From Hemiscyllium ocellatum (taxonomy: Eukaryota), in contig NC_083435.1 of assembly GCF_020745735.1 (NCBI RefSeq), positions 19,343,231-19,407,230 on the forward strand: 64,000 nt of DNA, read 5' to 3'. Below the pieces are notes generated by a model. That model searched no databases. It saw only the letters and a program-made list of their open reading frames with translations, and was not told where the DNA came from. Position numbers and translations under genes: made by a program. Of this stretch, positions 33,468 through 41,911 are shown piece by piece. Numbering within the stretch: the first letter of the stretch is position 1; each line of letters begins with the position of its first letter.

Positions 33468-33552
33468 CATATAATTACTAATGGGACCACGGCCAAACAC
33501 ACAACAATGGCTGCAATTATTCCAAAATGAGCCCTGGAATTACACCCAAGAC
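33468..33552 (-). CDS. Gene B transmembrane exon
   Basis: Acceptor TTTTCTTTTTTTTGTAG|, donor ATG|GTGAGT, 85 nt, phase 1 to 2. Reads GLGCNSRAHFGIIAAIVVCLAVVPLVII, an uncharged TM segment. Confidence 0.82.
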
Positions 33553-34089
33553 CTACAAAAAAAGAAAATTGTCTTTGATTAAGTGTTTATAGAAGGCAAT
33601 ACCTTTTATCAGTTGTAGTTTATAGAGGTTTGTAAAACATTCTGTGGCCATTTCAAATAAGTGCAGTGTCACCTTTCTTAATGCAGAAAGAATCCAACAC
33701 TCACCCTCTCCTCCCTGACCTATCACCTTCATCTGCTCCCCCACTCACCCATTGTACTCTATGCTACTCTCTCACCACCCCCACCCTCCCCTAGCTTATC
33801 TCTCCACCCTTCAGGCTCACTGCCTTTATTCCTGATGAAGGGCTTTTGCCCGAAACGTCGATTTCGCTGCTCATTGGATGCTGCCTGAACTGCTGTGCTC
33901 TTCCAGCACCACTGATCCAGAATCTGGTTTCCAGCATCTGCAGTCATTGTTTTTACCTCAATCAGTGTCAGTTGTGACTCGGTAACATTACTGTTTGCAA
34001 GTTAGGGAATTGAGAATGAAGATACAATGGTTAGGTTAGATGAGGAGGAGTAGTGGCAGAAATGGCCCACTTTGAGTGCTGGAGACTCC

Positions 34090-34357
34090 ACAATTTTATA
34101 TAAGCTTGACAGACATACTTTTAACAGACAGTTGGTACAACAGTGCATGTATAGCAACCAGAGTCCGATTTCTGAGCATGCTGAATGATTAAAGTACTAT
34201 TATCCTCCGATAGCCAATGACGCTCATGAGCTGGGAGCCAGTCCTTCTCTGGTCCACTGAACTTAATGGGCCCTACCTCCATGCACCACACAGTTCAGCA
34301 TTACTGGGAGGTGCTCGAGGCTGCAGTTACTGGAAATGGTGGGTGTGGAGAGGGGAT
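34090..34357 (-). pseudogene. Dead C2-set Ig exon of gene B
   Basis: Reads DPLSTPTISSNCSLEHLPVMLNCVVHGGRAH*VQWTREGLAPS, then after a frameshift HERHWLSEDNSTLIIQHAQKSDSGCYTCTV. The acceptor position reads GG (34359-34358) instead of AG. In-frame TAA at 34265-34263 and a +1 frameshift near 34230. The 3' end is approximate. Confidence 0.85.
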
Positions 34358-34539
34358 CCGGAGAAAGACAAAGACACAAGAGTTTTTATTAACCAACCAA
34401 CTTCCATTTATTGAGCATCTTTCAACTCCAGCTGTCACAAAGCACTTTGCAATCAGTGAAATGCAGCCACTGCTGTAATGTAAGAAAATCAGTTGCCAAT
34501 GTCACAGAGAAGTGTTGCTGTGCTAAGTCTGATGCTTAC

Positions 34540-36480
34540 GTGCAATTGGAAATGCTGGAAGGCCACACTTGGAGCACTGTGTTCAGATGTGGTCACCTTA
34601 TTATAGGAAGGATGTTATTTAACTGAAAAGAGTGAAGAAGAAATTTACAAATGTTGCCTGGACTCAATGGTCTGAGTTATAGGGAGAGATTGGACAAGCT
34701 AGTACTTCTTTCTTTATCGCACCCAGGAAACTGAAGGGGGAATCTTATAGAGGTATGTAAGATCATGACAGGCATGGATAAGGTAAATGCTCTCAGTCAT
34801 TTTTCCAGAACTGGGAAATAAAGGACCAATATTGGTTTAAGTTTAGAGATGAAAGAATAAAAGGGAACCTGAGGAGCAACTTTTTTATACTGAGGGTGGT
34901 TCACATATAGAATGAGCTGCCAGTGGAAGTGGTGGCAGCAACATTAACAACGTTTTAAAGTCATTTGGACAAATACATGGATAGGAAAGGTTTAGAAGGA
35001 TATGGGCCAAGTGCAGGGAAATGGGGTTAGCAAGAATGGACATTTTGGTCAGCATGGACCAGTTTAGGTTGATGGGCCTGTCTCCATGCTGTAGGACCCT
35101 ACGACTCTGGATGAGATACAGGAGTCCTTTCTGGTCTTCAAAATAGCAGTATGGCCACGAATTCACAGACAAAGATGTTATCAGTCTGAAACAATTTAAG
35201 AGATTCATTTCTAATAAGGATAGCAGATCACCTATGATCCCACTCAATGGCAGCACAGCCTTAATGGGCTGAATGGCCGACTTGTACTCCAACACTTTAT
35301 GGTGAGACAGAATCACAGAAGGATGTCATCATGCCTGCGCTGCTTCTATTCCATGTGACAATTCACCATATCCCTGTAAACAATAAACATCCAACGCTCC
35401 ATTGAATGTCTCAATTGAACCTGCCTCCACACCTTTCCAGGCGGTACATTCCGTAGTCTAAGTACTTGCTGTGTGAAAACATTTCTTACATCACTTTTGC
35501 ATTGTTTGCACAATCTTTCTTTCATGTTGCTTTTACAAGCAGGAACAGTTTCTTCATCTCTACTCTATTCAACTTACTTATTGTTTTTAAATCTTCTATC
35601 AAATCTCCTTTCAGTCTTCATGTCATCAAGAAGAACAGTTCCAAATTTTTAAATCTATCCTCGTGGCTGAAGTTTCTAATCCATGGAACTATGCTTGTAA
35701 ACCACTCTCTCCAATGCATTCACATCCTTCATATAATGTGGTTCTCACAACTGTGCCCAATAATCTCACTGAGATCTAACAAGTGTCTTGTACAAGCTCA
35801 ACATCACCTCATTGTTCTTGCCTTCTCCACCTCTATTAATAAAGCTGAGAACCTTGTAGACTTCATTAATTGCTCACTCCAGGTGCCCTGCCACCTTCAA
35901 TGATCTTTATGCCTGCCACCTTCAATGATTCATATATCCCTTGCCTTTTAAATGTCATAATTGTACAAGCCTCTATCACTTCCTCTGGCAGCTTATTCCA
36001 TCCTCTGCATGAAAAAGTTGTCCCTTTGGTCCCCCTTAAATCTTTCCCCTCTCACCTTAAATCTATACTCTCTAATTTTGGACTCCTCTACACTGAGAAA
36101 AAGACCTTGGTATTCACCTTATCCATACCCCTCATAATTTTATAAACCTCAATAAGGTCATCCCTCAGCTCCTGACACTCCAAGGAAACAGCCCCAGTCT
36201 ATTCAACCTCTCCCTAAAGCTGAATAACCCTGGCAACATCCTTGTAAATCTTTTCTGCACCCGTTCAAGTTTCAGAACATCCTTCCGATAGCAGGGGGAC
36301 CAGAATTGAATGCACTATTCCAAAAGTGCCGTAACCAATATCCTGTACAACCATGACATGTCATCCCAACACCTATAATCAATGCACTGACCAATAAAGC
36401 CAGCCATGTCAAACGCCTTCTTCACCACCCTGTCTACATGCGATTTCACATTCAAGGAACTATGAACCTGCAACCCAAGG
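34540..36480. mobile_element. CR1 LINE 3' fragments in both orientations
   Basis: Degenerate PHLEYCVQFW and RGDLIEVYKI sequence on + (34540-35100) and - (35300-36480). Confidence 0.7.
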
Positions 36481-39620: not shown

Positions 39621-40073
39621 ACATATTCATGTCATTCTGAAAAGATCATGAGGGTTTCTGCCCCTCAGAAGCTTTCCAGACAATACCATGTCCCTACCAT
39701 CTTCTGGGTGATTAAAAAAAAGCTCCTTCATTGTACTTCTTATCTTACTTCCTCCTGAATAGAGATTGTTCACTGAAGGAAAAAGTGCATGTTGGATGAT
39801 CGACACGTCATTAAGAAACTTCTACTTGGTCTCCTTTGGCATTCTCTATTTCAAAGTAAATATCCTCAACCAATCTTCCTTCATAACTAAAATTCTCCAA
39901 CCAAGTTCTATCCTTGTAATCTCCTCTGTACGGGGCTCAACTGCTCCTTCAGCATCTGCTAATGTGAATTAACACATCTTTATAATGATGAAAAGAGCAT
40001 CAGAGCATCTGCGCAGGTCACCCTGCTATTGTTTCTATTTGAACAGAAATGGAACCATTGTCCAGGTACTTAC

Positions 40074-40367
40074 CAATCACTGTTAGAGTTATCATTCTGG
40101 TCCTCCTCGAGTTCACAATTCTTCTGTAATTGCCCGTGTCTGCCTCGCGCACATCTTTTAGTAACAATGATCCATCTGATTTGTTCAGTTCAACTCTACC
40201 CTCATACGGATCAAATGTGTGTTGATGCCCTTCGTTGTAATCTACAATGGGAAGTGTTTTGCTAGAAGTTGAAAATTCCCAATGGAGACTGCTGAATTCT
40301 TCATCAGTTCCCGGAAATCGAACGGGGGCACCTGTAGCAGCCACCATGCTGTCTTTCAGATGCTGTG
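40074..40367 (-). CDS. Gene B exon 2: Cys-free V-set Ig domain, CD2/SLAM (CD48/CD58-like)
   Basis: Acceptor TTTTCATTTCAG|, donor ATTG|GTAAGT, 294 nt, phase 1-1, open frame. Reads QHLKDSMVAATGAPVRFPG...SLHWEF...YEGRVELNKSDGSLLLKDVREADTGNYRRIVNSRRTRMITLTVI. Confidence 0.9.
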
Positions 40368-41850
40368 CTGAAATGAAAATGAGTCAATCAGAACAAGGCT
40401 ACTGAGGAGATTTAATGGTCACAGAAATAGTCAGAAATGGCAGCAAACTCGCCTCCCCACCCACACTATTTGTCAATTGATATGACTAAAATTGACATTA
40501 ATATGTCATCTTTGTTAGCATTTCCTTGTCAGCTTTTCTCTAATTGTTACCCCAACAAGAGCCTTAATGTCGTCTTAAAAAAAAATAAAATTTAGGTTCA
40601 ATGGATGGGTGTGGTTTGGAATTATTGAAGTGACCTTTCAAAAGCTTTGAGACCTTTGACCCATTTTTGGTGAAAATTATACCATGGAGGTTAAGGGGAG
40701 AGGAGGGAAGAGGGACGGGGGGAGATGGGATGGTTGATTACCCTCCATTTGAAGTTGACCAACTCAGGAGTGCAGCTTCCCTGCACCATTTATCCAGCTC
40801 CGGGGGGAATGGGGCGGGGTGGTGAGAGAGCAGACGGTTATGGGTGGGGAGAATGAGAACAGACCACGCAGTGAAAGAATCAATTTATCCCTCTCGCCAT
40901 CCGCCCCCCCCTCATCCTAGTTTCAAACTTCCATCTCAGCACTGTCCCCATGACTTGTCCGGACTTGTCCTACCTGCCTAGCTCCTTTTCCACCTATCCA
41001 CTCCACCCTCTCCTCCCTGACCTATCACCTTCATCTCCTCCCCCACTCACCCATTGTACTCTATGCTACTCTCTCCCCACCCCCACCCTCCCCAAGCTTA
41101 TCTCTCCACGCTTCAGTCTCTCTGCCTTTATTCCTGATGAAGGGCTTTTGCCTGAAATGCCGATTTCGCTGCTCGTTGGATGTTGCCTGAACTGCTGTGC
41201 TCTTCCAGCACCACTAATCCAGAATCCACCCCCCCCTGCCTATTAGACAATCTGACACTGTAAACTTTGTTTTGAAAGCAGGAACAGAGCGATGTGCTTG
41301 GTGGATGGTGGTTGGGGAAGACAGGAGTTCTATCTCACGCTGAAACAAAACCTGAACTTCGGCTCCAGTTTTTTTTTTGCAACGAGTCTGTTTCTCCGCT
41401 CGAGAATGACCTCACCCTGCTCCATTCCTCTTCCCCTCTCAGTCAGTCCTGATTCCCAGCCAGTGTCTGGGACTGAGCTGTAGGCGCTGGGATATTGAGG
41501 GGCACTCTTAACTCATGCCTCAGCAACACGGTGTGAGTCACGGAGCGGGGGTAGGGATCTGCCCCGGAGATCGTGTCAACTAGACGGGAATGGATCGGAA
41601 AACGTCAGGCGGCTCGAACCGAATCTCAAACTGAGTGGAAATATCATCTTGTTTAAACCCACTCCCAACCCAGTGAACATTCCCACAGACTGGGCGGCTT
41701 CATCACAGACTACAAGATCAAAACATCAAAACTCTTGGCGTTGTCGATTCCCAGATCTCCCCGAGAGCATTTCTCTGTGTCATCGTTTCAGTTTGTTTTC
41801 ATCCGAGTCAGTCACTGTCGGTTTAAAGAGACTGTTAGAGATGGTTTTAC

Positions 41851-41911
41851 CTGAAGCCGAGTGAGAGAGAACTTGTAAAGCGCAAAGGAGAGAAAAGGCA
41901 AACATCTTCAT
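41851..41911 (-). CDS. Gene B exon 1: signal peptide
   Basis: Reads MKMFAFSLLCALQVLSHSAS+G with donor TCAG|GTAAAA in phase 1. Joins the V exon in frame (G|CA = Ala). Confidence 0.82.

Follow-up and report, generated by a model that had tools for sequence, protein, structure and literature searches.

A shark CD48/CEACAM-like gene with a dead C2 exon and a probable V-only product

The window analysed here, 64,000 nucleotides (nt) of Hemiscyllium ocellatum contig NC_083435.1, carries on its minus strand a gene of an elasmobranch family annotated as "CD48 antigen-like" or "CEACAM1-like". The family consists of small surface proteins with a V domain of the CD2/CD48 type, which lacks the disulfide, followed by a C2 domain and a transmembrane (TM) segment. 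A sequence-only reading of this DNA had described a gene that lost its C2 domain by exon death and lives on as a V-only receptor. We rebuilt the exons by script from positions 33300-42100 and compared the locus with that of related sharks. The leader, V and TM exons are open and have every feature ascribed to them, including canonical splice sites (Table 1). Joined, they form a single open frame with the junction ...TLTVI-GLGCNS.... The V donor and the TM acceptor are both strong by splice-site scoring and both in phase 1, and the open joined frame bears out the suggestion that the C2 exon can be skipped without loss of frame.

The C2 exon lies between the V and TM exons and is no longer intact. 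At least three lesions had been reported; there are four, the 29-nt deletion having been missed, and the start of the exon moves by 1 nt to 34357. The original C2 donor, GTATGT at 34118, is still in place, and the Pfam families ig, Ig_3 and I-set (Ig, immunoglobulin) match the open part of the exon. No other C2 exon had been seen between 34400 and 40000, and we find no further C2 exon of the family anywhere in the window: in a six-frame search of the whole genome with the intact C2 domain, the only match inside the window was 34127-34358. The exon also holds a derived internal donor, whose GT (34276-34275) is missing in the whale shark (rough donor score 7.8 versus -2.0 in the whale shark). 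With GG in place of the acceptor AG, enumeration of AG dinucleotides found two productive routes: a direct V-to-TM splice, or inclusion of a 27-nt micro-exon (34303-34277) that adds 9 residues. The remaining AGs that were tried as acceptors, whether ahead of the pseudoexon or inside it, lead to a stop or to an exon length that breaks the frame.

Table 1. Features of the CD48-like gene and its surroundings (positions in the window; splice junctions marked by a slash; aa, amino acids; SINE, short interspersed nuclear element)
Feature	Position	Strand	Details
Leader exon 1	41911-41851	-	ATG at 41911; 61 nt; 20-aa signal peptide + 1 nt; phase 1; donor CAG/GTAAAA
V exon	40367-40074	-	294 nt, 98 aa; V-set Ig without cysteine; phase 1 at both ends; acceptor tttcag, donor TTG/GTAAGT
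Dead C2 exon (pseudoexon)	34357-34119	-	239 nt versus 270 nt in the intact whale-shark orthologue
C2 lesion 1	34359-34358	-	acceptor AG>GG
C2 lesion 2	34265-34263	-	TAA stop, from TCT
C2 lesion 3	near 34238/34237	-	2-nt deletion
C2 lesion 4	34138/34137	-	29-nt deletion
C2 stub, first 81 nt of the old exon	34357-34277	-	upstream of every coding lesion; ends at derived donor GAG/GTAGGG (GT 34276-34275); acceptor in the window is GG
Stalk + TM exon	33552-33468	-	85 nt; acceptor tttgtag, donor ATG/GTGAGT; 9-aa stalk with one cysteine, then hydrophobic segment
Candidate last coding exon (uncertain)	30908-30863	-	homologue of an alternative tail exon of the whale shark (81% over 43 nt by blastn, E=1e-6; E=0.002 by tblastn)
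SINE-like repeat in the C2-TM intron	33926-33712	-	outside the gene product; second copy at 41014-41226, also intronic
PRY/SPRY exon of TRIM-like gene	45233-45811	-	just upstream of the CD48-like gene
Second disulfide-poor V-set exon, convergent neighbour gene	24271-24666	+	Pfam V-set E=4.9e-7; counterpart in the whale shark at L007 27868-28032

What did the gene look like before the damage? The V domain was searched, without a profile, against 1.8 billion representative proteins and returned 214 relatives. The nearest come from sharks and rays and bear NCBI names that include, besides the two given above, "hepatic and glial cell adhesion molecule-like". The majority of those inspected have ~250 residues and consist of V, C2 and TM with a very short tail. 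In Chiloscyllium punctatum, the protein GCC31337.1 (P0001) has a V domain 99% identical to that of the window, and the introns of its locus (L006) are 92-95% identical. This gene is therefore the orthologue in a close relative. The whale-shark gene (P0160, locus L007) is an intact V+C2+TM gene with a 270-nt C2 exon that has a normal AG and GT. A TRIM (PRY/SPRY) gene of 475 aa lies directly upstream of the orthologue in all three species and serves as a synteny anchor. The dead C2 is 73-76% identical to the whale-shark C2, its closest intact relative; in the C2 tree it groups with the C. punctatum copy, and by path length the whale-shark C2 comes next after C. punctatum. Orthology rests on synteny and the C2 tree; the V-domain tree did not resolve and was not used. 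The ancestral architecture is V + C2 + TM, and the presence of a complete gene at the corresponding whale-shark position upholds the claim that the C2 domain was lost by death of its exon.

A three-way alignment of the window, C. punctatum and the whale-shark positional orthologue, an approach that the sequence-only reading had put forward for dating the damage, divides the lesions into shared and lineage-specific ones. Both hemiscylliids have the TAA, the 2-nt deletion and the G>T change that makes the internal donor. These lesions are therefore older than the split between H. ocellatum and C. punctatum. The acceptor change (34359) and the 29-nt deletion occur in H. ocellatum alone. In C. punctatum alone, the original C2 donor has changed from GT to GG and both Ig cysteines have been lost. 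The pattern indicates that the C2 exon died once and then decayed further, independently, in both lineages. It also bears on the concern that the lesions might be assembly errors: the TAA and the 2-nt deletion are real, because they are present in an independent assembly of another species, and the acceptor GG and the 29-nt deletion are seen in the window assembly alone.

The C. punctatum gene model joins the V exon to the old C2 exon, keeps 81 nt from its start as a stub of 27 residues, and continues to the TM exon through the internal donor. "V + 27-residue stub" is a possible intermediate state, resting on the gene model, and loss of C2 may have passed through such a stage instead of by simple skipping. 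In Stegostoma tigrinum, the orthologue of the intact paralogue (P0005 versus P0168) has an annotated isoform, X3, in which an internal donor ends the C2 exon after ~38 residues and is spliced to the TM exon. Isoforms with V and a stub may thus recur in this family.

Evidence that the gene is alive comes from selection on the V exon. A comparison of the ratio of nonsynonymous to synonymous substitution rates (dN/dS) in the V and C2 exons had been proposed, and the two exons differ as a living gene with a dead exon predicts. Between H. ocellatum and C. punctatum the V exon has 7 synonymous changes and 1 nonsynonymous change, a conservative I/V replacement (dS 0.115, dN 0.0045, dN/dS 0.04). At most 1 nonsynonymous change among 8 is improbable under neutrality (binomial P=1.9e-4). 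The dead C2, read in its ancestral frame, has 4 synonymous and 10 nonsynonymous changes, a ratio of 0.75 that is near neutral. The two patterns differ both in the balance of synonymous and nonsynonymous changes (Fisher P=0.024) and in nonsynonymous changes per site (P=0.003). Since the shared C2 lesions predate the interval compared, strong purifying selection acted on V when C2 had already died. With the whale shark and the paralogue used to polarise the changes, 3 or more synonymous changes and no more than 1 nonsynonymous, conservative change in V fall on the H. ocellatum branch (P ~0.01 under neutrality). By this measure the gene appears to have outlived its C2 domain. The stub is different. 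In C. punctatum, 3 of its 5 changes are nonsynonymous, and one of them removes its Ig cysteine. The stub does not look essential, because it is evolving freely there.

Sequencing runs were searched for the share of sampled sequence words of a stretch that they contain. One run from the same organism (X1, 150 M letters) was guessed by the tool to be RNA; at that size, against a 4-Gb genome, it is not shotgun DNA. For 40000-40400 its share is 0.69; in that stretch the V exon makes up a fraction of 0.71 of possible words and DNA runs reach 1.00. The X1 share fits a spliced transcript with the whole V exon. For a related organism, presumed RNA runs from three studies contain 0.17-0.44 of the same words. 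For 33468-34358, X1 has at most 0.14 of the words, and a complete C2 exon would need 0.24. The SINE at 33712-33926 swamps this second search, giving a background of 0.10-0.15 even in distant species, and the X1 value is usable only as an upper bound. Presumed RNA runs from several shark species contain words of the SINE.

The V exon matches Pfam V-set (E=2.9e-6) and, weakly, Receptor_2B4. Its AlphaFold model is confident (predicted local distance difference test 92, predicted template modelling score 0.84), and the best fold match found with Foldseek in the PDB is CD48 (2ptv; template modelling score 0.85/0.86, root-mean-square deviation 1.6). CD48, 2B4 and the entry for the CD2-CD58 complex are within the top 16 matches; the V domains of nectin-1 and sodium-channel beta-4 score alike, and CEACAM15 D1 is 33rd. 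By sequence the V domain has weak matches to JAML (8e-5), CD48 (1.3e-3) and SLAMF6 (0.04), and alone it matches no CEACAM at E<=1. In contrast, the whale-shark orthologue matches CEA (6.9e-31) and CEACAM1 (4.9e-20) in the PDB, across the end of V and the C2. No CD2/SLAM chain is among the top 60 PDB matches of the whale-shark C2, and its Pfam match to Receptor_2B4 reaches only E=4.8e-5. The earlier label "CD2/SLAM-like" therefore suits the V domain, which lacks a disulfide and matches the CD48 fold, and is too firm for the family as a whole, whose ancestral C2 is most like CEACAM by sequence. Set against 15 relatives, the hemiscylliid V retains every invariant residue of the core; two residues have been lost, as has the DLDP motif, otherwise conserved, between strands F and G.

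The TM exon is homologous to that of the whale shark (77% over 264 nt), and in both H. ocellatum and C. punctatum it keeps both splice sites and its hydrophobic core. The stalk cysteine was gained in the hemiscylliid gene and is absent in the whale shark. As the sole extracellular cysteine of a V-only product, it suggests an interchain disulfide. The hydrophobic C-terminus, which follows small residues, resembles a glycosylphosphatidylinositol (GPI)-anchor signal of the kind found in CD48. Read-through past the TM donor meets TGA directly after W. The candidate tail exon has lost the homologous AG acceptor (now CAT); a nearby AG would give W and 14 aa before a stop, and the AG 2 nt upstream an immediate TGA. 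On either route the predicted tail has 0-15 residues, with no tyrosine and no signalling motif. A CD48-type ligand is suggested rather than a signalling receptor, because the cytoplasmic tail is short or absent.

We consider it fairly probable that the gene, a member of the elasmobranch "CD48 antigen-like / CEACAM1-like / HEPACAM-like" family, is alive, that its C2 exon became a pseudoexon in hemiscylliids, that the V exon is spliced to the TM exon and that the product is of the ligand type. The stop, the frameshift and the new internal donor arose before H. ocellatum and C. punctatum separated, and each lineage then gained splice-site and coding lesions of its own. In H. ocellatum, with the C2 acceptor reduced to GG, the V donor (40074) would be spliced straight to the TM acceptor (33552). 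The predicted product consists of a signal peptide, one CD48-like V domain, the 9-residue stalk with its single cysteine, the TM segment and the 0-15-residue tail. On the cell surface, near the membrane, it would serve as a ligand or adhesion partner that may be disulfide-linked by its stalk cysteine and would not signal by itself. Of the earlier proposal of a living V-only receptor, exon death in a gene under selection stands. "Receptor" is too strong for a protein with a very short tail and no tyrosine motif, and the exact mRNA is a prediction for which inclusion of the micro-exon is also possible.

We put forward only tentatively a more detailed account, of Ig-domain loss in steps. The whale shark would represent V+C2, C. 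punctatum V with the 27-residue stub, and H. ocellatum full skipping after loss of the acceptor. Remodelling of V (loss of DLDP and gain of the unique membrane-proximal cysteine) would have accompanied these steps. The outcome would be a V-only protein of the CD48/CD2 kind, disulfide-linked, hugging the membrane, perhaps GPI-anchored, and changed in its ligand specificity.

Several observations weigh against a live gene with a V-to-TM splice. The junction of 40074 to 33552 is predicted from the genome, and the RNA status of X1 is the tool's guess. No match for the gene from H. ocellatum was found in protein databases or in open reading frames of Logan transcripts, a search that is uninformative. 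Assignment of the tail exon is uncertain, its homologous acceptor being lost, and the C. punctatum model ends in an exon that lies in a 2.5-kb segment absent from the window. No clear constraint is visible in the TM exon, which differs from C. punctatum at 4 of 85 nt; three of these changes alter 2 residues (conservative replacements), and none lies in the last 47 nt. Finally, the acceptor loss is specific to the H. ocellatum lineage and undated, and the gene could have died recently despite constraint on V over most of the interval.

An alternative explanation built on this last point is that the gene is a recently dead, perhaps still transcribed, pseudogene in H. ocellatum. A protein of V, the 27-residue stub and TM would have been functional in the hemiscylliid ancestor and would still be so in C. 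punctatum; the AG>GG change broke it, and the V and TM exons have not yet decayed. The restriction of the acceptor lesion to H. ocellatum, the use of the stub in the C. punctatum model, the loss of the tail-exon acceptor and the lack of an H. ocellatum protein in the databases searched (uninformative, as noted) are all in its favour. However, skipping preserves the frame between a strong donor and a strong acceptor, and the V changes on the H. ocellatum branch itself point to constraint. In addition, a stub that evolves freely in C. punctatum was apparently not essential, and the whole V exon is represented in X1, the RNA-like run from H. ocellatum. On balance we regard recent death of the gene as unlikely.

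A second alternative accepts that the gene is live and holds that part of the pseudoexon is still spliced in, such as the micro-exon at 34303-34277 (acceptor ...cctcccag, donor GAG/GTAGGG), which would place 9 residues between V and the stalk. Exactly one in-frame, stop-free AG combination emerged from the enumeration, the derived donor is conserved in both hemiscylliids, and the Stegostoma isoform likewise cuts C2 at an internal donor. Nonetheless, the pyrimidine tract of the acceptor is weak, and the X1 share of 33468-34358 does not exceed the SINE background of distant species. Inclusion of a remnant is, in our view, improbable. Even less credible is conservation of the V exon for another use, in a secreted V-only product, in an intron-retaining transcript or joined to exons outside the locus, with the TM exon dropped: the TM exon lacks clear purifying selection and the 3' end of the gene is undefined, but the TM exon is open, has kept its splice sites and hydrophobic core in both species and offers the next in-phase acceptor downstream, and the neighbouring gene is convergent and has no same-strand exons to offer.

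The H. ocellatum genome has a paralogue 200 kb upstream, with its V exon at C113:19183504-19183803 and an intact C2 exon 26 kb further (19209398-19209667), that groups with the Stegostoma gene. A segment containing promoter, leader and the start of intron 1 (window 42058-41338, minus strand) is 92.8% identical over 721 nt to the paralogue (C113:19177278-19177973), and the leader peptides are 100% identical; the V exons are 75% identical at the DNA level. The likeness of the 5' module suggests gene conversion, strong 5' constraint or diversification of V. At 75% identity, the V exons are too different for conservation of V to be explained by gene conversion from the paralogue.

The genes flanking the CD48-like gene are the TRIM (PRY/SPRY) gene and another gene with a disulfide-less V-set domain. 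The 3' part of the locus differs among the three sharks. About 2.5 kb of C. punctatum (L006 13689-16194) are absent from the window, which has ~230 nt there instead (32484-32253); this C. punctatum-specific segment contains the gene model's terminal coding exon as well as repeat-like sequence. The whale-shark alternative tail exons (L007 30447-33938) lie beyond the V exon of the neighbouring gene, and their homologues in the window (30869-32246) lie between the TM exon and that neighbour. This difference in order points to a local rearrangement or an assembly difference, L007 carrying 7898 N. The N-terminus of the C. punctatum model was set aside: it is read from the counterpart of intron 1 in the window (~41466-41414) and is probably a modelling artefact beside an assembly gap (L006 1844-4999). 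In the window itself, positions 12572-12842 are 271 N, an assembly gap or masked stretch.

What is the significance of a gene that appears to have survived the loss of a domain? The number of domains often changes in immune receptor families, but genomes seldom preserve the states in between. In this case the order of events can be read from three shark genomes, and selection on V points to a gene surviving its domain. The locus provides a testable case from cartilaginous fish in which a two-domain CD48/CEACAM-like molecule would have become a one-domain molecule, and in which the effect of shortening on an adhesion or ligand molecule that binds in trans can be studied.

The gene resembles CD48, CD2, CD58 and the SLAM proteins in having a V domain without the canonical disulfide, with CD48 as its best fold match, and its ancestral form, V + C2 with a short or absent tail, is like that of CD48 and CD58. 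It differs in that the ancestral shark C2 is nearest to CEACAM by sequence and the tail has no immunoreceptor tyrosine-based switch motif. We know of no V-only member of the mammalian CD2/SLAM family. The likeness to the CEACAMs lies in a disulfide-less N (V-like) domain followed by C2-type domains, and CEA and CEACAM1 are the best PDB sequence matches of the whale-shark orthologue. Nonetheless, V alone matches CD48 better than any CEACAM N domain, the tail carries no immunoreceptor tyrosine-based activation or inhibitory motif, and the shark gene is likened to the CEACAMs by similarity, not as an established orthologue. The mammalian CEACAM family has TM members with only an N domain (CEACAM3 and CEACAM4), as well as GPI-linked members made by changes in the TM exon.

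The closest precedent is pseudoexon 3 of the human lineage III KIR2D genes, an Ig-domain exon that is retained but skipped, giving a receptor with one domain fewer (PMC3504360). In both cases an exon for a whole Ig domain stays in the gene, phase-1 neighbours keep the frame, and the ancestral state is visible in relatives whose exon still works (PMC3504360). The shark lesions are confined to one exon between open, phase-compatible exons, and the V exon has been under purifying selection since that exon died. The systems differ in family, domain type and clade: KIR genes belong to the LRC family of primates and encode C2-type domains, whereas the shark gene is CD48/CEACAM-like. KIR loses its N-terminal D0 and keeps two domains, whereas the shark gene loses the membrane-proximal C2 and V alone remains. 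The shark exon is also far more decayed than KIR pseudoexon 3, with a stop, two deletions and splice-site loss, and the sister species may retain an 81-nt stub. The mechanism would thus be one already known. What is new is the family and clade, the loss of the membrane-proximal domain to leave V alone, and the series of states across three species. Given KIR pseudoexon 3 and the single-domain CEACAMs, the value of the shark gene is as a clean comparative example, and not as a new principle.

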